From positions 23,250,001 to 23,314,000 of the forward strand of contig NC_087255.1 in assembly GCF_037042905.1 (NCBI RefSeq): a stretch of DNA of 64,000 bases. Direction: 5' to 3'. Origin of the DNA: Lytechinus pictus. Its lineage: Eukaryota. The notes beneath the pieces are model-generated. The model was not told the DNA's origin, ran no database searches, and worked only from the letters and a program-made list of their open reading frames with translations. Within the stretch, counting starts at the first letter, position 1, and each line of letters begins with the position of its first letter. This document shows, piece after piece, positions 3,359 to 62,278 of this stretch. The position numbers and the translations under genes were made by a program.

Positions 3359-6300
3359 GTAAGAATTCTTCAAGCTTATCACTCACAAATGATGTAGTTT
3401 TTTCAGTTCTTAGATTGCTGCTATCAGTCCTTCAATGCCCCCCACCCCTCTTACATGTACAAATGATATGATTGGAACGATTTCTCTCTCTTCTTCATCA
3501 GAATAAACCAAAAATGTTGTTTTCATTTAGGTAGGGAAGGGGAATTTAGATCAATTTTTTACAAAGCTATCCTTATTATATTTTGTTTTAATTAAAATAT
3601 ATAGAATGATGATAACATAGTGTCATATTACACAGGATACATGTACACTAATTTATCAAATAGTTCCTCAACCCCCATACATGTACTTCTATTTCATTAG
3701 TAAATTTGATATGTTGAGGGCAAGAAAGAGTAATGACAGAAATCATGCAATCTTATTTTGGGGGCTATTTTTAAAATAAGTTTTTAACGGTAATACCAAC
3801 TCTATTAGATTATGAACATGAATTTATTCTTCTTTTCTTGTTCCAATGTAGGTGGATCAAGTTCAGGTTTTGGAGCCAAAGCAGTGAGTATACTGTGGTC
3901 ACCATATTTAAGGACAGTGATTTTCTGTTTTTAAAAATGGCCTTTTCCATTTCAGAAAATCTTAAAGGGATGGTCCGGGCTGAAAATATTTATATCTAAA
4001 TACATAGAGTAGAATTCACTGAGCAAAATGCCGAAAATTTCATTGAAATCGGATAACAAATGATAAAGTTATTGAAGTTTAAAGTTTAGCAATATTTTGT
4101 GAAAACAGTCATCATGAATATTCACTAGGTGGGCTGATGATGTCATATCTCCACTTTCCGTTTTCTTATGTTATTACATAAAATCATATTTTTTTCATTA
4201 TTTCATACTTGTGTGAATAATATGTCTCCGTTATAATGAAATAGGTTGCAGCAATAAATATCTAGTGCACTAAATCAGTTGTCAATCCAATTTTTCTAGT
4301 TCTTGGAGGAAAAAATTTGAATAAATCTAATTTCATATAATAAAATACAAAAGAACAAGTGGGGATGTGACATCATCAGTCCACCTAATGAATATTCATG
4401 ACTGTTTTTACAAAATGTTGCTAAAATTTAAAATTCAATAACTTTGTTATTTGCTATCCGATTTCGGTGAAATTTTCGGCATTTTGCTCAGTGAATTCTA
4501 CTCTATTTATTAAGCTATAAATACTTTCAGCCTGGACCATCCCTTTAAATTCCATTTCAGCATGTCAGAATTTCCGTTTCCCCATTGACTTTGTGTACAT
4601 GAAAAAGTGACAATTCCGTTTACATAGAAAATCAATATGCAATGAGTAGCAATGTCAAAATGCTCCCGCTGGTCAAAATTTGTATCTGCCACTGTACTAA
4701 CAACTCTTCAAAATCAATTTTACTCTGAAGAGATTCAAGTACAAAAACTATATAAAGAAACATAATCAACATGAATACATTCTCACCTTTCACATTATTT
4801 TATGGTTAAATGAGATTTATCGCTGATTTGGGGACTTTTTGAGCAGTTGACGACTTTCGCCTATCTGCCATTTTGGATTTGTTGAATACCGCAATCATGA
4901 TATTATGACCGAACGCAGAGGGCAGCAACACACGGCCGTGTTTCTGCCTTTATGCGTACGTGAGTGTAAACTAATTTTGATACGATCGAGCGATGGAGGG
5001 GCTCGAGTGCAATCATGATGTGTGGATTGTCATGATTGTTGTAGCAAAGTGAGATCATGTTTATTTACCAGTTGATATTCATATTTCGTTGAGGATTTGG
5101 GAGTAATTTATGTTGCTATTCTGTGCATTTTGAGAAAAAATATGTTTTCTGTGATTTTCCGTTTCAAAAGGCCAATTCCGTGAATTCTGTCCGTTTTCCG
5201 CGATCGCATAAAAACACTGTCCCTACACATTGGTGATAGTATTGTATAGAAGAGAAAGGCATGTTAAAAAGTACATGATCATATAAAACTACTGTTCTCC
5301 ATAGCCCGTCCAGAGAACATGCAAGCTCTACCAGTGACCAGGACTTGTCTGTGGACACTGACCCTAAGAAACCCAGAGCTATTGTTCAGAAAATTCACAT
5401 GACGTGGTTCCCTATGAATGCCCTTACATTACATGTACATCAGCTGGTAGAGCTTTAATACTTGTTATTATGAATAGGGAAGATAATAGCAAAGCTAATA
5501 AACAAGTTCAAGGTTAAATAGCTTTATTCAGCTACTAGTATATAGCTTATCAGTGTTTGAACACAGGCAAAAGCACAGTATATGATGCACTTTCCATTAG
5601 CTGGGGTGCATTTTTTTAAATCACTATTAACGTATTTGAAAATGTAAAAAAGAAATAATCACTGGTACAAAATATCTCTATTTGATTGAAATACAGGAAA
5701 TGACATGAATTACCTGCTTTAATTTCCATTAAAGTCTGTCGTTATAATTTGAATAACATTCAATGGAATATGTATTTTCATGAACATCAAAAGGTAGCCT
5801 GCTTCAAATGCTCGCACAATGATTTCATATCCATCAATTTGGAATAGATTGCGTAACACAAACCCCAATACCCCATTAGGAAATTTCCAATGCACTCTTA
5901 CATTTTCTTTGAAAATTGAATGTGGATTTGTTATTTCAGAATGGATTTGGCATTGGTGTGGGTCGAGGCCGAGGAAGGGGTCGCGGATTCCAATCCTTCG
6001 GAGAGCAAGGTGGTGTTGGTGGTCTAACCAACGGTACGACTAACGGTACCAGTAATGGAGGAGATAGTGGTTGGAACGATGCCCCTTCTAATGATACCAG
6101 TAGCAGTCCTTGGGATGAAAGCAGTAGTAGTGGAGCCGGCAAGCGCAGCTTTGAGAGCAAGAGTAGCTTTGGTGGTGGTGGAGGAGGAGGACGAGGTGAG
6201 TATAATTTTCTAATCTGTGGGATCAATTTTTGATTGACAGAGGGATCATATTAAGGCCAACATGTTAGTCAATTCTCTTGGGACCACAGGAATCTGTTAG

Positions 6301-9300
6301 ACTAATAACAATTTTTGTCTCACCTGCATAGCAGAGCGAGACTATAGCCAGGCGTCACTTTTTCGACAGCAGCGGTGTCGTCAACATTGAAATCTTAACC
6401 TCGGGTGAAGATTTTAAAATGAAAGTTTTATAATTGTAACAAAATGACGTAAAGCCATACATTGATTAGTCATTCCTTTGTCACGCTTTAATTTTTTTTT
6501 AACAGGTGGTCGAGATAGAGGTGGACGTAGTTTTGGAGATTCTGAAAATGGAGGAGGACGTAGTTTCGGCAGACGTAAGAACTTTCCTTTTTTCTTGGTA
6601 TTTTATTCTGTTCATGTGGATTTTTAGAATGAGACAATGTAGTCATGATCTTGCTTCATTTCCAGTCTGCCAACGCAACCAATTGCTCATCTTCTATTAT
6701 TTTGTTTCTTTATTGATCAGGCATCTGTAGAATATTGATATCTTCCATTTGCTCTTACAAATAGTACTATAATAGCTTGTCATATTACAGTCATGTTTCA
6801 TTATTTGCTCTTTCAAAAAGACATTTGCATTCCTTATGATTTTGCTTGACATTTGCAATCTTTATTACCGTGCATCAGTGATATGGGCAAGAATTATTTT
6901 TAGTTTCCTCATGTAAATTCACCCGTGCTTCAGAGCTAGAGTTCAAGGAAATTAATAGGGATGAAGTCGAGGACGGCTTCGAGCTGAGTCGCTTGTACAA
7001 AGTCTTATTGGAAAAGGTTATATCCAACAGTCTGACTCGCAACTCCAAGCCTCAACTCCATGTCTGGAAAAAAATTATCAAAAAGAAAAGATTTGATTAA
7101 CCCTAAAACCGCCACGGCCATTCCGCTGCACGAGATTTTTCTTCCGTGCCGCTTACTGACTTTTCACTTTGAAGTCTTGCACATCTTTTGAGACCAAATT
7201 CACGATGCGCGGGTATGCGGTTCGAAAATTATGCAACATAAGTGCATGTCAGACCCGAAATTGCTCCAAAACGTGATTTTGTGTCAATTTAAATTGAAAT
7301 TTCTCACCTTATTCATAAAGATATGATTACTTTTACTTTCATTTGCTGAAATTAATTGATTTTATCATAATTGTGCTTTAATGCTTTAAAAAGTTTCTGC
7401 TATTAATTTGGCGAAAGAAAAACAAAAAGTCAGAAAACAAAGAAATTCATAAAACAATAAAATACAGAAGAAATTCATTTTCAACATTCATTTTTTCATT
7501 TGTAATTGTTAATAATGGTGATAAGAATATTTACACTAAAACAATTAGCACTCTGAGCTTTTTATAGTGAATTAAAGCAAAAAGTATGATTTTGTAAAAT
7601 AAACCATACAGCCTTGTAGATTGCATCCCTAAACAGTGCAATATCGTATAATGAAAAGAAAAATTGAAAAGCAGGGATTATGCTTTCTTACTTGCAAACC
7701 TGCTGGTGTTAGAATATTAATTTCAAATGGTCATTTGAAAACTTGCTCCTTTCTCTGCATTGTGTGTAAACTAAGTGTGCGCAGTGGTATTGCTCATTCT
7801 TCATGCATTTCGTAACAAACTTTTTGCAGTTTATCCTATATAGCGCTTCATCTTACCTATTGTTGCACTTAAACCGAATTCAATTTGAGATTGATCTTTT
7901 TTTCCTTTCTCTTAATTGCACAATTTGTTATTACTCTCAGTTTGAGTGTGATCTTAAATCTGTTGCAACTCTTTGTAGGACCAACCCCTGGGCCCTGTTG
8001 TACAAAGAGTTACGATTGATCCGATCAATCGTAAATATGGCAAGCCAGCAAAGTCAACATACGAAATGCATGTTTGTTAAAAAAAAATTCTAGATATGAA
8101 TGCATATCCATAAATTCATTGATTTCTTGACAATTTGGGGTGTTCTCCTTTGATTACAAAGGACATTTTACAAATTTCCTGTAGAAAAAATTATGACACT
8201 GATGGATTTCCATAGAGTTATGATTGATCGGATCAATCGTAACTCTTTGTACAACGGGGCCCAGTTGTATATCTTTTTCACTCTGATTTTCAAACCTTGC
8301 ATTTATCCTTCACCCTTTCATCCCCATTTATCCCCCCCCCCCCTTCTCTTCTGTATAACCTTGATCTTTATCTGGGTGTCTTTGTTGCACTGCATGTTGC
8401 ATAATATATATATTTAGGTGAGGGAGGTGGTGGTGGTGGTAGCAGTGGTGGTGACAGAGCTTGTTATAATTGCGGAGAAACAGGTCACATGTCAAGAGAA
8501 TGTCCTACAAAAGAATCAGGTTTGTTGAATTACTCGTTAAGATTGACTGTTTCTCAGAAAGGATGTTATGCGATGGGTCCATTTACAGGAGAATAACTTC
8601 CTGTGCATATGGTGCATTAACAGTATATGATTAATATCAGAGACACCACAAGGAGAAGACTGAAACGCTGGAAAGTGCGCCCTACGTCATCAAGTAAGCA
8701 GACAGTCGTGTATCACTATTTTGGGTCATTTACAAAACATGAGGGAAATGGTGGAGGGGTGTAGGAATAGATGATTTTTACGTTTTAAGATTTTTTTCTG
8801 CAATTTTTTTTCTAAAATTAGAAATGAATATATCGAAGAGCTTTTGGGGAAAGAAAAGGTGGAATTATCCCCATGTGCAGCAATTGTGCCCTCTCTCTGT
8901 CTTTGTTAATATCCAAATGTTCCTTGTGTAATTTCATCTGGAGTTAGAGTGATGGTGAAGGGTGGGGTTTGATTCAATTCCAGCTTAATTTCATTTCTAT
9001 CATTTTCTAGTTTTATGTTGAAAACAGCAGTTATCAGTTGCAATAATCCTTGTTAGTGAAAATCACTCTTACAATGATTTCATTTTTTTGCTTTATATCT
9101 GCAAGGAAGAAGCACTATAAAATTGTCCTTGATTGGGTTAAAAAAGCTTAACAAGTACAAATGGTTGTTGAATGCTTGTAAAGGTGGGATGAGGGAGGGG
9201 GCAGGGCAACTATTGGATCAAGGTCAATTAGCCACACATTCAAAGTGTATTCTGGGTTTGAAGGGGGGGCAAGGCAGTTTCTGAGTTTCCAGTGGCTTTA

Positions 9301-12300
9301 TCACTATCAGGAAATATCAGATCTCATATTTCACATTATATCTTTCATTCTATTATAGGTGGAGGCGGTGGTGACAGAGCTTGTTATAGTTGCGGTGAAA
9401 CGGGTCACATGTCGAGAGATTGTCCTACAAAATCATCAGGTTTGTTCAATTACTTGTTAAGATCGACTGTTCCTCAGAAAGGATGTTAAGTGATGGGTCC
9501 CTCTAGAAAAGTATTACTTCCTGTGCATGGGGTGAATTAACAGTATATGATTAATATCCAAGCTTAACAAGTACTAATGGTTGAATGCTTGTAAAGGTGG
9601 GATGAGGGAGGGGGCAGGTCAACTTTTCGATCAAGGTCAATTAGCCCTTATTTCCTGTATTATTGTCTCACCTGCATAGCAGAGTGAGACTATAGGCGCC
9701 GCTTTTCCGACGACGGCGACGTCAACACCAAATCTTAACCGAAGGATAAGTTTTTGAAATGACATCATAACTTAGAAAGTATATGGACCTAATATCTAGA
9801 GGGTATTCATTTGTCTCGCAATCTACTATGGTCAACAAGGAAATTCGTGATCACTCTCGCAAAAGTGTTCACTAGCTTACAAGTTACAAGTAAAAATCCT
9901 GTGCGAGTTTCAGGTCCCTTGATCAAGGTCAAAGGTCATTGAACTTTGGCCATGTTGGGGGTAATTGTGGAATTACCATCATAACTCTGTAAGTGTATTG
10001 GTCTAGTTCATAGAACTTGGACATAAGAATAATCAAGTATCACTGAACATCCTGTGCAAGTTTCAGGTCACATGACCAAGGTCAATGAACTTTGGCCATG
10101 TTGGGGGTATTTTGTCGCAATACTCGCTCAAGTAATAAATTTAATTATTCCAAGGTTAAAACACAAATTCATTAAGACAATATGGCCACGCAGTTGGAAC
10201 AATCTCCCTGATGGAATTAAGTACCCAACAATTACATCATTTAAATCTAAGTATCTGAATTTCCTGGGGCTTCATCACTATCAAGAAATCTCATATTGCA
10301 CATTATGTCTTACATTGTATTACAGGTGGAGGTGGTGGTGACAGAGCTTGTTATAATTGCGGTGAAACTGGTCACATGTCAAGAGAATGTCCTACAAAAG
10401 CATCAGGTTTGTTAAATAACTTGCTAAGATCGACTTCCTCAGAAAGGATGTTAAGTGATGGGTCCCTCTACAGGAGAATAACTTCCTGTGCATGTGGTGA
10501 ATTAAACAGTATACGATAAATATCCCAATGTTAATTGTGTAATTTAAACTAGAGTTCGTGTGATGGTAAAGGGTGGGGTTCGAGGGAGGGACCTATGATC
10601 AAACTATTCTCCTTTCAATTCCAACCTGTTTTCATTTCCATCATATTCTTTTTCTATGTCCTACACAGGAGGTATCAGGAGGTTTCGCTTGTTAGTGAAA
10701 ATCACCGTTTGAAAACCATATTACAATGATTTCAATTTCACTTTGCTTTTTATCTTTAAGGAAGAGGTACTTATTATTGTCCTTGATTGGGTTGAAAAGG
10801 CTTAACAAGTATAAATGGTTGTGGAATGCTTGTAAAGATGAGAACAGAGAGGGGGCAGGGCAACTTTTGGATCAAGGTCAAAAAGCCACACAGTCACAGG
10901 TTGAAGGGGGGGGCAGGGCAGTCTCTGAATTTCCCGGGGCTTTATCACTATCAGGAAATCTCATATTGCACTTACGTCTTTGATTCTATTACAGGTGGAG
11001 GTGGTGGTGACAGAGCTTGTTATAATTGCGGAGAAACAGGTCACATGTCAAGAGAATGTCCTACAAAAGAATCAGGTTTGTTAAATTACATGTTAAGATT
11101 GACTGTTCCTCAGAAAGGATGTTAAGTGATGGGTCCCTCTACAGGAGAATAACTTCCTGTGCATGTGGTGAATTAAACAGTATATGATTAATATCCCAAT
11201 GTTAATTGTGTAATTTAAACTAGAGTTTGTGTGATGGTAAAGGGTGGGGTTCGAGGGAGGGACCCATGATCAAACTATTCTGCTTTCAATTCCAACCTAT
11301 TTTCATTTCCATCACATTCCTTTTTGTCTCGCCTGAATGAAGTTTGTTAGAGACCTAGTAATCACTTTTCTTGTTAGTCTGATCGAAAATGTTTAATTTT
11401 TTGTTCAACTTGCTCTCATTTTTTTATTGTATCCCCCGAACAGAGTTCGGAGGATACTATAGATTTGGCCGCGCCGCGTCTGCCGCAGCCGCGGAGATTT
11501 CCTTGTGAACGCTCTATCAGCTGCATTTCTTCTCCGATCATCTTCAAATTTGGCATGAAGGTCGAGTATGGTATAGCGAAGCCGCCTATATATTTTGGTG
11601 TGGGCAGAGACATCGTTGCCATGGCAACAAGAGTTTTTGTGGAAATAGCAGAGATGTCCTTGTGAGCGCTCTACCAGCTGCATTTCTTCTCCGATAATCT
11701 TTTAATGTGGCATGAAGGTCCATTATGGTAAAGCAAAGCCGCCTATTGATTTTGATGTGGGCGGAGACATTGTTGCCATGGTAACAAGAGTTTTTGTCGT
11801 GACAGGGTTCCAAACGGGGGGTCCGTCCGTCACAAACCTTATGACACAACTCCACAACCGTAAGTCACTTTTCAACCAAACTTGGATGGTAGATGGACTT
11901 GGGGGACCTGCATGTTATGCTGCAGTTGGGGGTCAAATGGTATGGTCAAAGGTCATTTTCAGGTCAACGTTAAAGTTTACATGCAAGACTCTTATGACAC
12001 CTAACTCCGCAACCGTAAGTCACTTTTCAACCAAACTTGGATGGTAGATGGACTTTGTGGGGACCTGCATGTTATGCTGCAGTTGGAGGTCACATGGTAT
12101 GGTCAAAGGTCATTTTCAGGTCAACATTAAAGTTTACATGCAAGACTCTTATGACACCTAACTCCGCAACCGTAAGTCACTTTTCAACCAAACTTGGATG
12201 GTAGATGGATTTTGGGGGACCTGCATGTTATACTGCAGTCGGAGGTCAAAGGTCATTTTCAGGTCAATGTTAAAGTTTACTTGCAAGACTCTCTTATGAC

Positions 12301-15300
12301 ACCTAACTCTGCAACCGTAAGTCACTTTTCAACCAAACTTGAATGGCAGATGGATTTTGGGTACCTGCATGTTATGCTGCAGTCGATGGTCAGATGGTAA
12401 GGTCAAAGGTCATTTTCAGGTCAACGTTAAAGTTTACATGCAAGACTCTCTTATGACACCTAACTCCGCACCCGTAAGTCACTTTTCAACCAAACTTGGA
12501 TGTTAGATGGACTTGGGGGACCTGCATGTTATGCTGCAGTCAGAGGTTACATGGTAAGGTCAAAGGTCATTTTCAGGTCAACGTTGAAGTTTACATGCAA
12601 GACTCTTTCTCCGCAATCTTAAGTCACTTTTCAACCACACTTGGATGGTAGATGGGCTTGGGGGACCTGTATGCTAAGGTCATTGTCGCCATGATAATTG
12701 TATTTATTTGTCAAATTTCAGTGTGAGCTCTATATATCGCAATGACGGATGACCCGGTGGGTTCGGGGATACCTGTGCCTGGTTGCGCGACCCGCCGAGC
12801 ATCTCTAGTTTCTGCATCAATTAGGTTCATACTTTGTACGTATGATCCTTGGGTAATACCACGTGTGTCCATGGGGTCATATGTCATCTAGGGGTCAAAT
12901 GATATGAGGTCATGTATGTCCCCAAAATATTAAAGTTTTTGTTCAACTTCCTCTCATTTCTGCATCAATTATTTTGACACTTGGTACATTTGATCCATGG
13001 GTAATACCACATGTGTGTCCATGAGGGTGATGGGGTCAAAGGTCATCTGGGGGTCAAAAGGTCAAGTTTTTGTTCAAATTGCTCTTATTTCTTTATTTCT
13101 TCAATTATGTTGACACTTGGTACATATGATCTTTGGGTAATACCACATGTTTGTCCATGAGGGTGATGCCTTGGTGACAAAGGTTATCTGGGGGTCAAAA
13201 TGTCAAGTTTTTGTTCAAATTGCTCTCATTTCTTCAATTCTGTTGACACTTGGTACATATGATCCTTGGGTAATGCCACATGTGTGTCCATGAAGGTGAT
13301 GGGGTCAAAGGTCATCTGGGGGTCAAAAGGTCAAGTTTTTGTTCAAATTGCTCTCATTTCTTTATTTTTGCATAAATTGTGTTTACATTTGTTACAAATA
13401 TCCATTGGGTAATATACTCCACATGTGTCTATGAGGATGATAAGGTCAAAAGATCATATTGCATATTTTATCGATCACGTTATCAGGCGAGACTTGTAGT
13501 TCGTGAGCCACCTTGTTTATGTGATACATACACAAGAGGTATCAGTTGCAATATCACTTATTTGTGAAAAACACTATTTGTTTCATTTGTGAGAAACCAT
13601 ATTACAATGATTTCAATTTCACTTTGCTTTGTACCTTCAAGGAAGAGGTACTATTGCTATATGATTGTCCTTGATTGGGTTGATAAAGCTTAGCAAGGAC
13701 TTGTAGGTGGGATGGGGGTGGGGCAGGGCAATTATTGGATTAACCACACAGACAAAGTGTAGTCCAGGGTTGAAGGGGGGGGGGTGGGCAAGCAGTCTCT
13801 GAATTTCCTGTGGCTTTATCACTATCTGGAAATACAGGAAAATTTCATATTGCTCTGATGTCTTTCATTTAATAACAGGTGGTGGAGGTGGCGGTGGCGG
13901 TGGTGGGAATTGCTTTAGATGTGGAGAATCAGGCCACTTCGCCAAGGAGTGCCCCAATCCAGATACAAGAAGTAAATTTTTATGTGATGTAGTGGAGTAA
14001 TGAGAAAATGAAAAATTATAAGTTGAGGGGGCATGATATTGCATTGGGTAAAATGTCTAAAAAGTTGAGAGCAAAATCATGACTTCTTTCAAATGGATAT
14101 CTAGTTATGCAATTGATTTTGAGATGGTCAGAAAATGATATTTCACCAAATATGTTTTTTTTTTTCTTTTTTTTCTTCTTTAATCATTGGACTTGTGTGT
14201 GATGTGTGTAATAATGCTTTCTATTTTATCAACACTACCCTTCTCACTGACATCACCCTTCTCACTGACATAGTTTTTACTTTCACTTCTTTTATATTAA
14301 ATTCACCCCGTTCCGCATACCTTTGTAATCTAGTAACTACTGCTACTAACTACTAACCCTTCAAATTTTTCTGAGATCCCAAATGTATAAATACTAATTA
14401 CCGATCTTAGGCCGATGATGAGTTGTAAATCTTGAAACATGTTCTGTTTATTAACATATTATGGAAATGTACACATGTTAAACAGATTTTGCTATTTATC
14501 TTTTTTGTTTCTGTATTTTTTACTTCTGCAGCTGAAGGTGAAGGTGGAGAAGGTGAGTTAATCTGTTTGATATCTTTATTAATCTGTTTGATATGTTTGT
14601 TAATCTGTTTGGTATGTTTGTTAATCTGTTCAATATGTTTGTTAATTTGTGCGGGTGTAAAATGAAGCTAAAGGGGTATGTGACACAGACCTGTTGCATA
14701 AAATTTACTTTTATACTTATACCATGGAAAGTGTGAGCAACAGCCGATCTAAATCAAGGATTTCCAAATACGTTCAACCCTCTAAATTTTGTATGGCTTG
14801 ATGGAATCGTGGTTAGAAAAAAGTGTTATCTTACTAGGTATTGCTCTATTATTTCTCCTTCATTAAGAGTTCAAGTGATCAGAGTGATTTTTCAAAATCA
14901 GCCTTAATATAACCATCTGAAAATCTCCTTATGGGATATGCAGACATAAAATCAATTCAATCTTTATTTCGCAAATAAAATAAAAATGCAAAGAAACATC
15001 GAGTGTGAGTTGATACACAATCAATTGCAGGCTTTCCACGAAGGTCATAAAAAACCTATCAGGCTGGATCGCCAAAACAGAACACAACATAAATATATAA
15101 ATAAATGAATAAATAAATGGATCTATTTGTTTATTTACAGCCAAGCCACCTGCGTCCACCTATGTCCCTCCTCCCCCTTCCGAAGAAGAAGAACAGATAT
15201 ACATGAGCACACAGCAGGGTATCAACTTCAACAGGTATGATGATATCCCGGTAGAAGTCAGCGGTCGGGACGGGCCCAAAAATATACGATCATTCGAGGA

Positions 15301-18300
15301 GGCGGGGCTAGACGAGACGGTGTTGGAAAACGTACGCAAGGCCCGTTATGCCAAGCCAACACCTGTACAGAAGTACGCTATACCCATCATCGGCGCTGGT
15401 CTTGATCTCATGGCATGCGCCCAAACGGGTTCCGGGAAGACGGTGGGTTTACTTAATTTCATATGAACCTTTTTACTACTCACACTGTAGTCTATGATAA
15501 TAATGGGAGCGTTTCACGAAAGGACTTGACAGACGTTTTATCCGACAGTTGCCATAGTAACAGTGCTTCTCAGCCAGTCAAAACCAAGGAAAGTTGTCAA
15601 GACAAACATGTGTTGAAACACTCCCCAAGTTTTCAATTTCTGAGGTGTTCAAATTTTGAAACTGTTATACAATTTTCGGCCAAATTTCAGATCACAACAA
15701 GGCTATAAGATATAAATTGTCATGTGATTAATATCCGTTTCAACTTTAATCACTTAAGACTTTTCCCATGAAACTGGCAGCATCACACTTAGCTACCTAC
15801 TGTAAGGTTACAGTGCACCTTTGTATTCTTTTGTGCTGCATGAATTAATTTGTAGTCTTTCCATTCTTCAAAAGTTCTTTAAGATGGGTTTAGTCGTTGT
15901 CTATGAAAACCAGTTGGTCTGTTAAGTAAGCTGGTGGAAATACATTGATTAGTCAATGTAGCAATGTTTACCAATATATTTCAGATTCTATCAGGACCCT
16001 CAACTATGCAGCATTTACGTCACAATGGTGAAGTTAATGATAATCTCAATGACACTGTACGACCACTTTCATTTCCATCCAGGCGGCCTTCCTCCTCCCT
16101 ATCATCACCAACATGATCACTCAATTGGGCTGCGTCAGTTGCTTCAGCGTGGTTCAAGAACCCCTCGCACTCATCGTGTCGCCTACCCGCGAGCTTGCCA
16201 GCCAGATCCAGAGCGAGGCACGCAAGTTCTGCCGCAACACTAGCCTGCGACCCGTGGTGATTTACGGCGGCACCAGCGTTGCGCATCAGACCAGGGAAGT
16301 TCAGAATGGATGTTCAATCCTCGTCGCAACACCTGGACGTATGCATGATTTCATTGGCAGAGGACATGTAAGTTGAATCAGCAGCTTAAATTGCCCAGAA
16401 TTCAATGCTGTTTTCAGGCCAGCCTTTTCCGGTTAGGATTAAATCACATGAAGTTATGCAAAGCTCATTGTGGGTGCAAGAGCTCTATCAAAACGACACC
16501 CTTAAATGAGTATTATGCAATTAATAGGTATGAGAAGAACTTGGTGCAGACGTAAACCCCAGAAGTTAGAAGTCAACGGATCAAGACCAGGAACCCGTTG
16601 ATTAAAGAAAAGTAACCTAACAATTTTTGTAAAGTATGCCATCATGTATGGCTCATCAGCTGATCAAACTGAAGTATTCCATGGTAGTTCACAAGCTTGC
16701 CATGATTGTATGTCTTTTTTTCCCTTTAAAATGCTTGAATGCATAACAGTAACTCGGCTACTAATAGACTTCTGGTAAAGACATATTAGGCATTATTTGT
16801 TTTTTTCTTAAAGGTCAAGTCCACCCCAGAAAAATGTTGATGTGAATAAATAGAGAAAAATCAAACAAGCATAACACTGAAAATTTCATCAAAATCGGAT
16901 GTAAAATAAGAAAGTGATGACATTTTAAAATTTCGCCTATGTTTCACAAAACAGTTATATGCACAACTCAGCAACATGCAAATGAGAGATTCGATGATGT
17001 CCATCACTCACTATTTCTTTTTTTTTTCTTTTTTTTTGAATTATACAAAATTTCAATTTTTACAGATTTAACATTAAGGAACTAACTTTGCTGAACCATA
17101 AAACATTAAAAGAATGGAAATACCACATGTTCATGGAGGAATAAAACTTTGTTTCATAGAACAATGAGGAGAAAATTAGAATATTTCATATAATGAAATA
17201 CAAAAGAAAGAGTGAGTGGATGACGTCATCAGTCCCCTCATTTGCATACCGACCAGGATGTACGTATAACTGTTTTGTGAAATTAAGCGAAACTTTAAAA
17301 TGTCATAACTCTCTTATCTTACACCCAAGTTTGATTAAATTTTCAGTGTTACGCTTGTTGGATTTTTCTCCTTTTATTCAAATCAACTTTTATTAGGGGT
17401 GGACTTTTCCTTTCATGCCGTTTAACCCTAAATAGACTGGGCTATTTCGATGCCTAAGAAGACTGGGGGGGGGGGCTGATTCAGCCCCCCCTTATGATCT
17501 CGGCCGTCAATCGCGCGATCGCGACAAAACTTGGCACGCGCGTTACCCATGGCATGATCTACAAAACTACAAGATCAAATTCTTCGAAAAATCTCATTGC
17601 TAATTAATTATGCTAAATTATGCGTAAAATCAAAAGTTTGCTTTAATTAACTAAATAATGCCCCTAAAATGCTAAATTTTGGTACACAGACACTTTATAT
17701 GAATCTGATCAAATGTACTTAAAAAAATTCAAAATCACATTTATTTTCTTATGTATTTTATTGTTTTCTAAATTTCTTATGTATTTCTTTGTTTTCAACT
17801 GTCTGTTTTTTATTGGTTTTTCAATGTAAATTGTCAGGGACTTTATTTTGACCATAAATAAGATGGAATCAATTGATTTCAATCTGTAAAAGGAAAAATA
17901 ATGATACATTTTATGAGTTTTGGCTGAAAAGACTATTTGCATTGGATTTGTACACAAATTCACGTTTTTGTGCAATTTTCAATTTTGGGTCTGCATGCAC
18001 TTTCAAAATGTTACGTAATTTCGAAACCGCGTGCCTGGGGGTCGCAAATTTGGTCTCAAAAGTTGCGTGAGACTTGAATGTAAAAAGTCAGTGAGCGACG
18101 CGGTAAAAAAGCGGATTTATCACGAAAAATGTCGAGGGGGGGGGGGCTGAATCAGCCCCCCCCCCCCCCCCCCCCAGTGTTATTAGGGTTAATGCCCTAG
18201 CTGTCGGTTATCATGTACACAATGTAACAGTATTTCAAGCATTTGTTTTTTGCTGTTTTCCCTGTCACTGTAGATTGGCCTAGGTAAACTGAAGTATCTG

Positions 18301-21300
18301 ATCCTTGACGAGGCAGACCGCATGGTGGACATGGGCTTTGGTCCCGAGATCCAGAAGCTCATTGACCACCCGCACATGCCTCCCAAGGGTGAGCGTCAAA
18401 CCCTGATGTTCAGTGCCACCTTCCCCCCTGAGATCCAGGAGAAGGCTGGGATGTACCTCAACGACTATCTCTTCTTGACTGTCGGCAGGGTGGGAGGAGC
18501 TGCCTCTGACATCGAGCAGAGGGTACTCTCCGTCAAGCAGTTTGAGAAGCGGGAGAAGCTGATGGAGATCCTCAGGGATCAGAACGGTAGGTTTTGTTAC
18601 AAGTATATTTTCCTGTCCGGGGGAAAGAAGGAGCTAGTGTAGGAAATATATGAGGGCTGCGGGCGATGTCGCCCTCTCTGACAACCTGAAGTCCCCCTAG
18701 AATTTTCAAAGCAGAATTATTTTGGGGCGACCATCTTTTTTAAAGTTGGCCAAAGATCTGACTCAAACAATATTGTGGATAGTAATGCATTGGAGAGATG
18801 TTCTGAATGGGCGTGGGGATAGTACCGGTAGTAGGTACATGGAAGAGGTCGTTGGTAAACCAAACTCAACATAAGACAATTATTGTGGAAAGGTAGCCCC
18901 CGAAATTTTTTTTAAAAGCCTCTGAAAGTTATAAAAGTACTCCCAATTATTTTCAAAAAACTTGATTTTGGAGCCCCCCCAAAAAAAAAATTCCCTAAAG
19001 AGTCTGTGAATAATTTGATAGCATATTTTAGGGGCCTTATTTAGTTAATTGGAGCAAATTTTCTAATTTACATATAAATCAAGAATTAGCAATGAGATTG
19101 TTCGAAGAATTTGATCATACTGTTCTGTAGATTATGCTGTGGGTAACACGCGTGTCGATATTCGTCGCGTTCCCGCGATTGGCGGCCAAGATCATAAGGA
19201 AGGCTGAATCAGCCCCCCCCCCCCTATCTTTTTAGGGTTAACAAGCTGGAGAGGCTGATGGAGAACTTGAGGGATCAGACATGTAGATTTGGGTAGTATC
19301 TTTTCTTGACTTGGGGAGGGTAGGAGCTGCCTATGACATCGAGCAGAGGGTGCTCTCTGTCGGGTAGTTTGAGAAATGGGAGAGGTTGATGTGGGAGGAA
19401 CTGCCTCTGACATTGAGCAGAGGATGTTCTCAGTCAGGCAATCCTATAAAGGGATCAGAACATTAGATTTGGGTAGTATCTCTCCTTGACTTGGGGTATA
19501 TTATAAATCGATCATTATCTTCATGGTTGAATTCTCATCTTTTTCAGAGGATGATCGTACCTTGGTGTTTGTTGAGATGAAGAGGAATGCTGATTTCTTG
19601 GCTACTCTTCTAAGTCAGTCTGACTTCCATGCTACAAGTATACATGGGTAAGTCTTCCATTACTTTATTAGATTTTTTTAAAAGGTGATAAAATTTTCAA
19701 TAATTTATTAAGAAACTAAGTTCATAAAGAACTATGATTCACAGGCAGCTGATTGAAGGCATATCACTTTATAACCCGGAGTGAATGTGATTCAGTTCGT
19801 TTTTTGCCCCCCAGTCCCAGGTGATGCCAAACAAATAACAATTTTTGATCCGTTATCTATCCCCCCAGTGACCGTCAACAGCAGGAGCGTGAAGAAGCTT
19901 TGCGAGAATTCAAGATCGGCCGTGCACCAATCCTCGTTGCTACATCAGTTGCTGCCAGAGGTCTCGACATCCCAAAGGTCAAGCATGTTGTCAACTATGA
20001 CCTGCCTAAGGAGATTGACGAGTATGTGCATCGTATTGGGCGTACCGGTCGTGTTGGAAACACTGGAAGATCGACTAGCTTCTATGATGCTGAGAAGGAT
20101 TCTAACATTGCCAGGGCTCTTATCAAGATCTTGGCTGATGTAGGTCACTTCATAAGAAACGTGCAGAACTTATCCCATTTTCACCAAAATATTTGATAAT
20201 ACTTATCATAGGAAGCCTTAGATTAAGAAATTATGAAGTATATGGGTCAGAATACCAACATAAATGCACAAAAACTTGTATAACATTACTAGAAATACTT
20301 CATTCATTTATCAGAATTAATAATTCATAACCTACCTTGATTCTTAGTAAATACATTTCAATCGATTTTAACAAAATACATGTAACTGAGGGTCAAATTA
20401 CTTACATCAATGCCTAAAAAATCTAAGATTTCACAAGAAAACTTTATTTTATATGTTGTTTAATAAAAATAAAAAAAGAGAAAAATAATGCAGTAATAGT
20501 AGTGTAGATTTGTAGAGCACACCGTCCAAAGACGCTCATGGGGTCAGCTCAGCATCAGGTCTCTTTTACATAACAAGCTACAAATATAAGCTAATCTACA
20601 TATAACCTGAAATTCAAAAGATAATCACACCGAAATAGTTCAGTCATTTGTTCTTTTCAAACGTACTATAAATAATAATGCCATTGGGATGTACGATTAC
20701 AGCTTTGTAAGGCATATTATTGTGATGGATATGTAATTGTGTTGTTTACCATACAGGCTTCTCAAGATGTACCCGAGTTCCTAGAGGAGGCAGCTGAATC
20801 AGCTCTCGGAACATACTATGGTAATGCTGGTGGAAGCTTCGGAGGCCGTGACACCAGAAAGGTACGCAGAACCCCTACGTTATAGTTTTTGTCTCGCCTG
20901 CATAGCAGAGCGAGACTATAGGGGTCGCTTTTCCGACTGCGGCGGCGGCGTCAACATCAAATCTTAACCAAAGGTTAAGTTTTTGAAATGACATCATAAC
21001 ATAAATATATGGACCTAGTTCATGAAACTTGGGCATAAGGGTTATCAAGTAATACTGGACATCCTGCCTTGGTTTCAGGTCACATGACCAAGGTCAAAGG
21101 TAATTTAGGGTCAATGAACTTAGACTTTGTTGGGAAATCAATATCAAAATCTTAACCTAAGGTTAAGTTTTTGAAATGCCATCATTACTTCGAAAGTATA
21201 TGGATCTAATTCATGAAACTTACACATAAGGGTAATCAAGTATTACTGAACATCCTGCCTTGGTTTTAGGTCACATGACCAAGGTCAAAGGTCATTGAGG

Positions 21301-24300: not shown

Positions 24301-24440
24301 TTTTACAGTTTGGTGGACGTGGTGGAGGAGGAGGAGGAGGAGGCAGGGGCGGCAGTAGTTTTGGTGGTAACTCCGGTGGAGATGAGTGGGGATCTGGAGG
24401 AGGAGGAGACGGAGGAACTGTGGATGAATCATGGGATTAG
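3328..24440 (+). CDS. vasa: Vasa/DDX4 DEAD-box RNA helicase, multi-exon, 5'-partial: join(3328-3358,3852-3883,5940-6195,6506-6574,8418-8519,9359-9439,10326-10406,10995-11075,13879-13971,14532-14552,15141-15442,16083-16367,18274-18586,19548-19647,19869-20139,20757-20861,24309-24440)
   Basis: All 17 exons have AG/GT boundaries with compatible phases; total 2355 nt = 784 aa + TAG. Motifs: Q (PTPVQ), I (AQTGSGKT), Ia (PTREL), GG, Ib (TPGR), II (DEAD), III (SAT), IV (LVFVE), V (ARGLD), VI (HRIGRTGR). RGG-rich N-terminus, CCHC knuckles and an acidic-Trp C-terminus (DESWD) favour vasa over PL10/DDX3. Start exon not found. Confidence 0.96.
3852..3883 (+). CDS. vasa: vasa exon ([11 protein letters not shown])
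   Basis: tgtag acceptor, gtgagt donor, phase 1 to 0. Confidence 0.8.
3966..4544. mobile_element. Fold-back MITE with TTAA target duplication (Kolobok-like AG...CT ends)
   Basis: ttaa|agggatggtcc ... ggaccatccct|ttaa; arms inverted over about 190 bp; probably nested in an older element 3909-5225 (taaggacagtg/cactgtcccta). Confidence 0.85.
5940..6195 (+). CDS. vasa: vasa exon with [12 protein letters not shown] and G/S-rich disordered segment
   Basis: ttcag acceptor, G|gtgagt donor; same frame as ORF 5916-6233. Confidence 0.92.
6314..6440 (+). mobile_element. 5' fragment of Helentron-like (HINE) repeat family
   Basis: ttttgtctcacctgcatagcagagcgagactatag hairpin start, also at 9664 and 20888. 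Confidence 0.6.
6506..6574 (+). CDS. vasa: vasa exon ([23 protein letters not shown])
   Basis: Poly-T + aacag acceptor, C|gtaaga donor, 69 nt, phase 1-1. Confidence 0.88.
7101..7600 (-). mobile_element. Degenerate piggyBac-like MITE, inverted relative of 17426-18188
   Basis: ttaa|ccct start; internal sequence is the reverse complement of about 17650-18110. Confidence 0.65.
7988..8264. mobile_element. MITE with about 43-bp TIR CTGGGCCC(T/C)GTTGTACAAAGAGTTACGATTGATC
   Basis: Near-perfect terminal inverted repeat; related ends at 39829, 47816, 54361, 57472. Confidence 0.85.
8418..8519 (+). CDS. vasa: vasa zinc-knuckle exon K1 ([14 protein letters not shown])
   Basis: CX2CX4HX4C; tttag acceptor, G|gtttgt donor; 102 nt. 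Confidence 0.9.
9359..9439 (+). CDS. vasa: vasa zinc-knuckle exon K2 ([14 protein letters not shown])
   Basis: CCHC motif, intact splice sites, 81 nt. Confidence 0.85.
9664..10115 (+). mobile_element. Truncated HINE-like repeat with AAGGTCAAAGGTCA units
   Basis: Same 5' hairpin and internal units as 20888-22553. Confidence 0.65.
10326..10406 (+). CDS. vasa: vasa zinc-knuckle exon K3 ([14 protein letters not shown])
   Basis: CCHC motif, intact splice sites, 81 nt. Confidence 0.85.
10995..11075 (+). CDS. vasa: vasa zinc-knuckle exon K4 ([14 protein letters not shown])
   Basis: CCHC motif, intact splice sites, 81 nt. Confidence 0.85.
11326..13517 (+). mobile_element. Helentron-associated (HINE/DINE-1-like) non-autonomous element with about 135-bp tandem repeats
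   Basis: Subterminal inverted repeat gtctcgcctga (11326) / tcaggcgagac (13483), short 3' hairpin, T-run insertion site; absent from the paralogous intron copy at about 10650. Confidence 0.75.
11429..12810 (+). mobile_element. Second HINE-like element nested in the first, with about 155-bp tandem array (about 5.5 copies, 11838-12680)
   Basis: gtatcccccgaa...ttcggaggatac 5' hairpin, 3' ttcggggatac (12762); flanks rejoin to ctctcattt|ctgcatcaatt, one repeat unit of the outer element. Confidence 0.75.
13879..13971 (+). CDS. vasa: vasa zinc-knuckle exon K5 ([14 protein letters not shown])
   Basis: Divergent CCHC motif; aacag acceptor, A|gtaaat donor; 93 nt. Confidence 0.88.
14532..14552 (+). CDS. 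vasa: vasa 21-nt micro-exon (T-EGEGGE)
   Basis: Long pyrimidine tract + ctgcag, strong AG|gtgagt donor, phase 1-1. Confidence 0.75.
14556..14648. repeat. Tandem repeat of about 21 bp (gttaatctgtttgatatgttt), about 4.5 copies
   Basis: Directly visible just after the micro-exon donor. Confidence 0.9.
15141..15442 (+). CDS. vasa: vasa exon: [15 protein letters not shown] motif, Walker A
   Basis: ORF 15203-15466 frame; tttacag acceptor, gtggg donor. Confidence 0.95.
16083..16367 (+). CDS. vasa: vasa exon: motifs Ia, GG, Ib
   Basis: AAFLLP...PTREL...YGG...TPGR; gtaagt donor. Confidence 0.95.
16812..17411. mobile_element. Kolobok-like MITE (TIR AGGTCAAGTCCACCCC)
   Basis: ttaa|aggtcaagtccacccc ... 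ggggtggacttttcct|ttca; long inverted arms; another end at 22557. Confidence 0.8.
17426..18188. mobile_element. piggyBac-like MITE
   Basis: ttaa|CCCT...AGGG|ttaa; subterminal gggggctgattcagccccc palindromes; partial copies at about 18990-19237 and 22620-22885. Confidence 0.85.
18274..18586 (+). CDS. vasa: vasa exon: DEAD box and SAT
   Basis: [17 protein letters not shown]...MFSATF. Confidence 0.95.
19242..19496 (+). pseudogene. Decayed tandem copies of the 3' part of the vasa DEAD exon inside the following intron
   Basis: ggagctgcctatgacatcgagcagagggtgctctc and tgcctctgacattgagcagagg match 18496-18530; stops and indels present. Confidence 0.8.
19548..19647 (+). CDS. vasa: vasa exon: motif IV to SIHG
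   Basis: [16 protein letters not shown]...TSIHG; ttttcag acceptor, gtaagt donor. Confidence 0.93.
19869..20139 (+). CDS. vasa: vasa exon: QxxR, motifs V and VI
   Basis: DRQQQERE...ARGLD...[12 protein letters not shown]. Confidence 0.95.
20757..20861 (+). CDS. vasa: vasa exon ([11 protein letters not shown]...FGGRDTRK)
   Basis: QxVPxFL and FGGRDxR are typical of the vasa/PL10 C-terminus; atacag acceptor, AG|gtac donor. Confidence 0.92.
20888..22553 (+). mobile_element. HINE-like element with tandem AAGGTCAAAGGTCA-containing units
   Basis: 5' hairpin gtctcgcctgcatagcagagcgagac, (gcg)n, repeated about 180-190 bp units; interrupted by 21357-22222. Confidence 0.7.
21357..22222. mobile_element. 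Kolobok-like non-autonomous DNA transposon nested in the HINE
   Basis: ttaa|agaccctgaccgg ... ccggtctggatct|ttaa. Confidence 0.75.
23409..23985. mobile_element. MITE with poly-G/poly-C TIRs and (G)ATTACAT target duplication
   Basis: ccggg..ggcacttccattggcgagtggataccat / atggtatccactcgtcaatggaagcgccc..cgg; 7-8 bp TSD. Confidence 0.85.
23995..24130 (-). mobile_element. L2/CR1-group LINE ORF2 C-terminal fragment
   Basis: [16 protein letters not shown] resembles the DRAFSxxAPxLWNxLP tail of these LINEs. Confidence 0.6.
24309..24440 (+). CDS. vasa: vasa terminal coding exon (RGG/Gly-rich, ends VDESWD*)
   Basis: Long pyrimidine tract + acag; in-frame TAG at 24438-24440. Confidence 0.92.
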   Translation, partial: FGGRGGGGGGGGRGGSSFGGNSGGDEWGSGGGGDGGTVDESWD

Positions 24441-31980: not shown

Positions 31981-32289
31981 ATGGATCGTCGAGGTGGCGG
32001 CGGATCTCGGTCTGCAGGCAACAAGAATGACGAACTCATCGTTAAGAGTGCAGACATGTCAGACGAAGACCAGGATCTTGCCTGTGATATCGCTAAGGAC
32101 GCCATGGGGAAGTTCAACGTCGAGAAGGACATTGCCGCCCATATCAAGAAAGAGTTCGATAAAACCCACGAACCGACTTGGCACTGCATCGTCGGGCGCA
32201 ACTTCGGCAGCTACGTCACGCACGAAACAAAGAGTTTCATTTATTTTTACATCGGTCAGAAAGCATTCCTTCTCTTCAAGTCGGGATAG
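31981..32289 (+). CDS. DYNLL: Dynein light chain LC8-type, paralog 1 (102 aa)
   Basis: ADM...[13 protein letters not shown]...[19 protein letters not shown]...LLFKSG; splice acceptor ttctag directly before the ATG. Confidence 0.96.
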
Positions 32290-54948: not shown

Positions 54949-55254
54949 CTAGCCAGATTTGAAGAGAAGAATCGCCGTCTGTCCGATGTAGAAGTAGGTG
55001 AAATTATCTTTCTCGTGAGTCACAAAGCTGCCGAAGTTTCGCCCGACGACGCAATGCCATGTTGAGTCGTACTTGTTGTCGAACTCCTTCTTGATGTAAG
55101 CAGCGACGTCCTTCTCGACGGGTTTGTTCTGTTTGTCACCGAGCTTATCCATGGCTAACTTGATGGCTTCTTCCTGCATTTCCTCGCCCATGTCAGCGTT
55201 TTTGACAACGGCTTTGTCCTTCTCATTCGACATTCCCGAGTAACCGCGATTCAT
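54949..55254 (-). CDS. DYNLL: Dynein light chain LC8-type, paralog 4 (101 aa)
   Basis: KAVVKNADM...[13 protein letters not shown]...[16 protein letters not shown]...ILLFKSG; acceptor gctag|ATG on minus strand. Confidence 0.96.
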
Positions 55255-61969: not shown

Positions 61970-62278
61970 CTAGCCAGATTTGAAGAGAAGAATGGCCGTC
62001 CGTCCGACGTAGAAGTAGATAAAATGATTCTTCTCATGTGTCACGTGACTGCCATAGTTACGACCCACAATGCAATGCCAGGTTGGCTCGTGCTTTGTGT
62101 CGAATTCCTTCTTGAGTTCGGCAGCGATGTCCTTCTCGAGTGGTTTGTTCTGTTTATCGCGAAGCATTGCCAACGCGAGTTCGACGGCGTCATCTTCCAT
62201 CTCTTTGCTCATGTCGGAATTCTTGATTTCAAACTCCTTGTCGGGCTTTCCGGAATAGCTTGATCCTCCTCGGTTCAT
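61970..62278 (-). CDS. DYNLL: Dynein light chain LC8-type, paralog 5 (102 aa)
   Basis: IKNSDM...[13 protein letters not shown]...[18 protein letters not shown]...ILLFKSG; acceptor ctatag|ATG on minus strand. Confidence 0.96.

Follow-up and report, generated by a model that had tools for sequence, protein, structure and literature searches.

Tandem amplification of zinc-knuckle exons in the vasa gene of the sea urchin Lytechinus pictus, probably founded at a junction within glycine codons

Intragenic exon arrays that arose via unequal crossover include the kringle IV-2 repeats of apolipoprotein(a) and the repeats of nebulin. Here we describe an array of zinc-knuckle exons in the gene for the DEAD-box protein Vasa (DDX4) of the sea urchin Lytechinus pictus, located in a stretch of 64,000 nucleotides (nt) from the forward strand of contig NC_087255.1 (positions 23,250,001 to 23,314,000; RefSeq assembly GCF_037042905.1). 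This whole stretch is referred to below as the window, and L. pictus coordinates are window positions, with all vasa exons and introns on the plus strand. The array resembles those of kringle IV-2 and nebulin in its head-to-tail units of exon plus intron, in the symmetric phases of its exons and in the mosaic identity between copies; with such exons, units can be gained or lost while the reading frame is kept. It differs from these arrays in that its boundaries lie in a coding glycine tract of two old paralogous exons and not in introns, in that its new exons are hybrids of the acceptor side of one exon and the body of the other, and in that it comprises only four small units. The locus adds a neat case to those already known of exons amplified through unequal exchange, and its less common feature is the location of the founding junction in a coding low-complexity tract, creating hybrid exons.

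Vasa is the standard marker of germline and stem cells, and among sea urchins L. pictus now serves as a genetic model. In the Vasa/DDX4 proteins of other animals the knuckles likewise occupy the region between the RGG repeats and the DEAD-box core, in numbers that depend on the species: three to four in gene models of the sea urchin Strongylocentrotus purpuratus, three in Diadema antillarum and four in the clam Ruditapes philippinarum (PMC3226660). Animals vary widely in how many zinc knuckles Vasa carries at its N-terminus, and such changes have rarely been followed in DNA; L. pictus differs from the other animal Vasa genes in that an exon-level route of number change is visible. No description of vasa knuckle exon amplification was found in the papers that could be searched.

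Exons bounded by AG and GT between 5940 and 24440 join into one open frame that encodes RGG repeats, five CCHC knuckles, a complete DEAD-box helicase core and, at the C-terminus, an acidic tail. Outside the first coding exons, which were mapped in part, this spliced model and L. pictus isoform X1 (795 residues, XP_063963209.1) are identical; the first coding exon (MSEDWNAPSSS) was searched for within the window and was not found there. Pfam matches to the model were DEAD (PF00270; 1.2e-45), Helicase_C (PF00271; 3.2e-35) and zf-CCHC (PF00098; 3.8e-41, in five stretches), and the translations of the helicase exons contain the Q, GSGKT, DEAD, SAT and HRIGRTGR motifs. The flanks are also of the Vasa type, with RGG exons (5940-6574) encoding the N-terminal part and a C-terminus that ends in DESWD. 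The top protein matches were DDX4-like proteins of L. pictus and L. variegatus, the S. purpuratus "vasa protein" (77% identity) and Patiria miniata vasa, and the exon at 15143-15442 (100 residues), used as an HMMER query, returned a 738-residue L. variegatus DDX4/DED1-like protein (98% identical). Judged by these top matches, the closest relatives appear to be vasa/DDX4 rather than PL10/DDX3, and on this sequence evidence we assign the gene in the window as L. pictus vasa (RefSeq LOC129271580). The five knuckle exons, together with isoforms that skip them (zero to five knuckles), are already in the public RefSeq annotation, which names the product "uncharacterized protein" or "DDX4-like" and is silent on the repeat structure and its origin.

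The five knuckle exons, designated K1 to K5, were found by the gene model and its AG/GT sites to lie, exact to the base, where a preliminary description of this DNA had placed them (8418-13971). Each of the five is bounded by AG and GT, is in phase 1-1 and has a length divisible by three, so that gain, loss or skipping of a knuckle unit keeps the reading frame, and a regular expression for the spacing C-X2-C-X4-H-X4-C matched in all five. K1 (8418..8519; 102 nt) has its own acceptor and opens with a long glycine/serine tract (8418-8453), which is followed by the body that we term K1-type. K2 (9359..9439), K3 (10326..10406) and K4 (10995..11075) are each 81 nt long; K2 joins a K5-type upstream intron to a K1-type body, and K3 and K4 are of the same chimeric type. 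The bodies of K1 to K4 are 90-100% identical, with K2 as the most diverged K1-type copy (N to S, E to D and E to S) and K4 matching the 3' 81 nt of K1 at all 81 positions. K5 (13879..13971; 93 nt) is an older CCHC knuckle, different from the others as the preliminary description had noted, and has only the acceptor, the upstream intron and the glycine tract in common with K2 to K4. Its core differs from those of K1 to K4 at 16-18 of 45 nt (36-40%), and 6-7 of the 8-9 codons for conserved residues carry a silent change, which places the silent sites near saturation. K5 is the orthologue of the last knuckle of S. purpuratus Vasa, to which it is 90% identical at the amino acid level, and K1 to K4 match the K1-type knuckles of that species; as both types thus have their own S. 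purpuratus counterparts, the two knuckle types predate the split of the two genera.

Repeats within the array were mapped by self-BLAST and MAFFT, and homology of the flanks was assessed by local alignment against dinucleotide shuffles. Introns 1 to 4, which follow K1 to K4, are one sequence in four copies, with BLAST E-values between units of 1e-57 to 1e-158. In agreement with the preliminary description, K1 to K4 share their downstream intron (over approximately 120-250 nt, with the first 120 nt 86-95% identical) and K2 to K5 share their upstream intron (about 85-88%). The upstream homology extends over approximately 300 nt for K2, K4 and K5 (86.5-88% overall; 86.5-87% for K5 as compared to K2 or K4, and 87.8% for K2 as compared to K4). 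For K3 it is split into the last 76 nt and a piece at 9560-9646, because a 603-nt insertion interrupts intron 2. Intron 3 (10407..10994; 588 nt) is the cleanest copy and forms, with K3, a basic unit of approximately 669 base pairs (bp). Intron 1 (8520..9358) consists of a 5' part (8520-8638), a private insertion of 269 nt (8639-8907) and the remainder (8908-9358); intron 2 (9440..10325) has lost its middle part and carries the 603-nt repeat insertion at 9647-10249; and intron 4 (11076..13878) carries a 2204-nt insertion of repeats and satellites (11325-13528), among them five copies of a 157-bp unit (11838-12676) and approximately five copies of a unit of about 135 bp (133-148 bp; 12802-13457). 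The 5' part of intron 4 (11076-11324) is 94% identical to intron 3. The 3' part of intron 4 (13529-13878) corresponds by homology to the 3' parts of introns 1 and 3, whereas intron 2 retains only its last 76 nt of this stretch. Identity between introns 3 and 4 is mosaic, with 94-96% in the 5' parts and 87% in the 3' parts. Overall, the unit copies differ by 4-14%, with Jukes-Cantor distances between intron copies of 0.05-0.16, and the knuckle unit was found at no other site in the 812-megabase genome.

The introns that flank the array, i.e., the intron before K1 (6575..8417) and the intron after K5 (13972..14531, which ends at a 21-nt microexon), are unique, as the preliminary description had stated. 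Neither had a BLAST match to introns 1 to 4, and their local-alignment scores against the array were within those of the shuffles (z from -1.0 to 2.7), as compared to z = 39.9 for a control in which the sequence upstream of K5 was aligned with that upstream of K2. The intron before K1 (100-400 nt upstream) also scored like shuffles against the array introns (z from -0.6 to 2.7). A 16-nt patch (13/16) that MAFFT aligned between the K1 upstream intron and the others was rejected, as it was within shuffle expectation.

At the left boundary of the array, the homology between K1 and K2 to K4 starts inside the glycine/serine tract of K1. At the right boundary, divergence is approximately 13% in the intron adjoining K5 and ancient (36-40%) in the core of K5, and the jump from one to the other falls within the glycine codons. 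Because divergence jumps at these points and the flanks are unrelated, both ends of the array lie between the acceptor AG and the first non-glycine codon. The junction tract of K2 to K4 is 14 nt long and shares exactly 10 nt with the tract of K5 and 12 nt with that of K1; 8 nt are common to all three. These comparisons indicate that the founding breakpoint lies in the poly-glycine codons and not in an intron, with no single nucleotide placeable, and that K2 to K4 are hybrids, with a K5-type intron and acceptor in front and a K1-type body, donor and intron behind. Both the combination of a K5-type acceptor with a K1-type body and the position of the boundaries inside the glycine-codon tract had been anticipated in the preliminary description, as had the lack of relation between the K1 upstream intron and the introns upstream of K2 to K4.

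We consider it likely that a unit of exon plus intron was duplicated through a junction in glycine codons and was then multiplied by whole-unit exchange. In the ancestral gene, a K1-type and a K5-type knuckle exon would have been separated by one intron. A stretch that began with the K1 body and included all of that intron would then have been duplicated in tandem, with the junction among the (GGN)n glycine codons at the start of each of the two exons. This would have created a new exon that could be spliced in frame, with a K5-type intron and acceptor in front and a K1-type body and donor behind. Homology of approximately 8-12 nt would have sufficed for the founding junction, which probably formed by unequal exchange or replication slippage in the glycine-codon repeat. 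Once two units of approximately 670 bp existed, unequal crossover or gene conversion between whole units would have raised the number to four copies, and the same whole-unit exchange would have kept the copies 86-100% alike. Whole-unit exchange is supported by the mosaic identity of introns 3 and 4, by the identity of K4 and K1 over 81 nt and by the different counts among relatives.

The preliminary description had invoked crossover in (GGT)n codons and three duplications of this kind. The junction in the glycine tract is retained here, but only one founding event needs it, and the later copies probably inherited the junction through whole-unit crossover. With regard to the founding step itself, the exact homology shared by K1 and K5 is short (8 nt), which suggests that microhomology-mediated joining or slippage is at least as likely as true crossover.

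Counts of knuckles in related sea urchins were obtained from protein and gene models for S. purpuratus and L. variegatus and from DNA for Diadema antillarum (GCA_040938485.1). At the protein level, K1-type knuckles number two in S. purpuratus, four in L. pictus and four to five in the L. variegatus models. In the S. purpuratus models, an extra first knuckle, different in type, precedes two identical K1-type knuckles and one K5-type knuckle; a remnant of this extra first knuckle was searched for in the L. pictus window and none was found. The ancestor with one K1-like and one K5-like knuckle, as originally proposed, is therefore too simple, given the extra first knuckle and the two K1-type knuckles of S. 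purpuratus. By marker residues, K1, K2 and K4 of L. pictus have counterparts in L. variegatus and K3 has none; as counterparts and counts differ between the two species, units have been gained since the Lytechinus species split.

In L. variegatus, two near-identical sets of vasa gene models are present on one scaffold of 36.2 megabases. The sets differ by one substitution (G68S), by one glycine codon in K1 and by the number of K1-type knuckles (up to four as compared to up to five), and three K1-type knuckles of the five-knuckle set are identical at the protein level. These sets may represent alleles or an uncollapsed haplotype, paralogues from a recent gene duplication, or differing selections of isoforms, and their different counts are a hint, and the sole pointer, to polymorphism within a species. 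Protein searches with the knuckle region found no further echinoid Vasa; the matches were CNBP-like proteins and Vasa of other phyla.

The vasa gene of Diadema antillarum resembles that of Lytechinus in that each knuckle has its own exon, which opens with glycine codons and has recently been duplicated together with intron sequence. In contrast to Lytechinus, intron sequence on both sides is common to the three Diadema knuckle exons (for example, 7817-8312 as compared to 8380-8853, 86%) and no exon is chimeric. Given this shared sequence on both sides, the breakpoints in Diadema are intronic, and the glycine-tract boundary in Lytechinus is thus not a general artefact of such arrays. The Diadema gene (about 7600-12000) has independent knuckle-exon duplications of its own, in one of which a knuckle copy was carried along with the RGG exon region before it (7606-8313 as compared to 11273-11952, 76.5%).

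Several observations weigh against the history proposed for the L. pictus array or limit what it covers. The 8 nt of exact homology that K1 and K5 share today are far below the requirement of classical meiotic crossover, so the founding event may not be aptly described as "crossover". Within the low-complexity tract the junction has no finer position, and it could coincide exactly with the intron-exon border. In addition, K1 has 21 nt more of glycine/serine codons than K2 to K4, so that at least one further insertion or deletion in the tract must be assumed. Divergence among the introns dates only the last homogenisation and not the founding event, and, as S. purpuratus already has two K1-type knuckles, the origin of the array may predate the Lytechinus lineage. 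Finally, RNA support is thin (approximately 1x), and it is the RefSeq model that shows all five exons as included.

The intronic breakpoints of the Diadema knuckle duplications bear on one alternative, i.e., that ordinary exon duplication with breakpoints in introns also occurred in Lytechinus, and that the upstream intron once shared by K1 was later removed, either by a deletion that took an S. purpuratus-like first knuckle with it or by turnover of the intron before K1. This alternative would fit the presence of an additional first knuckle (ACYKCQEEGH type) in S. purpuratus, which Lytechinus is without, and the first knuckle exon opens with R|E-Gly in both species, so that K1 of Lytechinus may have a remodelled 5' end. 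It does not explain the right boundary of the array, however, as introns 1 to 4 are homologous from donor to acceptor, up to the AG before K5, and the duplicated segment must therefore end at the start of K5. Moreover, the region 6575-8417 contains no remnant of an extra knuckle or of a shared upstream intron. We thus regard intronic breakpoints with later loss as improbable in L. pictus.

About equally doubtful is the explanation that K2 to K4 are old, independent knuckle exons in which gene conversion from K1 replaced the bodies and the downstream introns; the ends of the conversion tracts, and no duplication junction, would then give the exons their chimeric appearance. Conversion would account for the identity of K4 and K1 over 81 nt next to introns that differ by approximately 8%, for the mosaic identity of introns 3 and 4, and for knuckles that are more alike within species than between species. 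The identity of K1 and K4 at silent sites is not significant on its own, however, as only about 15 silent sites are available. The upstream introns of K2 to K5 are also homologous over approximately 300 nt, and the introns can be aligned over their full length, so the conversion tracts would span entire units and would be indistinguishable from unequal crossover; that three tracts would end in the same 14 nt is, in addition, unlikely.

Because each intron has its own insertions and deletions, the copies are not an assembly echo, a point already made in the preliminary description. Tandem units of 670 bp at approximately 90% identity can be difficult to assemble, but expansion of a single K1-type unit, or of fewer units, by repeat mis-assembly is highly improbable, since the copies are 4-14% divergent and have insertions of different lengths (269, 603 and 2204 nt), RefSeq isoform X1 has four distinguishable K1-type knuckles in genomic order, and a few RNA reads fell on the K2, K3, K4 and K5 bins and none on the intron bins without repeat insertions.

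RefSeq isoform X1 uses all five knuckle exons, and other L. pictus isoforms skip K2, K5, K1, K1 and K5 together, or all five. From the phase-1 split codons, the residues T, A and P are predicted at the junctions of the skipping isoforms, and exactly these are present there. The gene is thus predicted to be able to encode Vasa with zero to five RNA-binding CCHC knuckles before the DEAD-box core. RNA reads from four raw runs of unknown tissue were aligned to 8250-14150, with the glycine tract of K1 skipped as a simple repeat. Read depth was approximately 0.1-2x on the knuckle bins (about 1x on K2 to K5) and nil on the insertion-free intron bins, and nearly all reads fell on the repeat insertions. 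The orientation of the reads was consistent with a transcript from the plus strand, and no exon-exon joint was present among the rows shown. A search for sequencing runs found none with more than 22% of the words of the stretch, and these are probably repeat words. Both satellites of intron 4 were represented in the RNA reads.

A repeat at 9647-10249, which begins with the motif tgtctc(a/g)cctg, has similar starts at approximately 6318, 11325 and 20890 and is inserted in several vasa introns. This repeat family reached hundreds to over thousand-fold RNA depth, mostly on one strand, in all four runs, with many rearranged joints, and looks like an abundant, transcribed family similar to short interspersed nuclear elements. 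A scan of 6200-14200 against Rfam gave nothing, and the repeat matched no Rfam family.

The locus illustrates one route by which knuckle number can change, in which glycine-codon repeats at the starts of phase-symmetric exons would give rise to an in-frame hybrid exon that is then multiplied as a whole unit. In practice, primers, morpholinos, CRISPR guides and short-read splice calls in this region would match several near-identical exons, and the annotated "isoforms" with zero to five knuckles need confirmation by long reads. If copy number is polymorphic, natural variants would be available for testing the role of the knuckles. It is tempting to speculate, although we consider it rather unlikely, that the (GGN)n tract of echinoid vasa knuckle exons acts as a built-in recombination joint for the in-frame gain, loss and swap of modules; natural Lytechinus populations would then vary in knuckle number, which could, together with exon skipping, tune the strength of RNA binding by Vasa or its entry into germ granules and the spindle.

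Outside the array, an RGG/glycine-rich vasa exon at 5940..6195 is bounded by AG and GT, ends in phase 1 and gave a 100% tblastn match to residues 33-118 of isoform X1. The RGG exon directly before the knuckle array (6506..6574; 69 nt) is in phase 1-1, as is the microexon at 14532..14552 (21 nt; EGEGGE), which joins the array to the helicase core. This microexon is present in all RefSeq isoforms examined, including those that skip every knuckle, and its EGEGGE residues are conserved in the L. variegatus and S. purpuratus proteins. The later vasa exons, which encode the DEAD/Helicase_C core and the acidic tail with its tryptophan, are located at 15141-15442, 16083-16367, 18274-18586 and 19548-19647, and the last exons at 19869-20139, 20757-20861 and 24309-24440, the last of which includes the stop codon.

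The intron before K1 contains a pair of 32-nt arms (8003-8034 and 8211-8242) that are 91% alike and separated by approximately 180 nt; by eye, the stretch (8003-8242) resembles a small inverted-repeat element of the miniature inverted-repeat transposable element type, yet the match came from a plus-strand (direct) search. Just past the donor of the microexon, a 21-nt tandem repeat is present in four to five copies (14557-14661). Downstream of vasa, three uninterrupted open reading frames of approximately 101 codons, at 31981-32286 (plus strand), 54952-55254 (minus strand) and 61973-62278 (minus strand), matched Pfam Dynein_light (LC8 type) with E-values of 1e-35 to 1e-37 and form a local cluster of dynein light chain paralogues.

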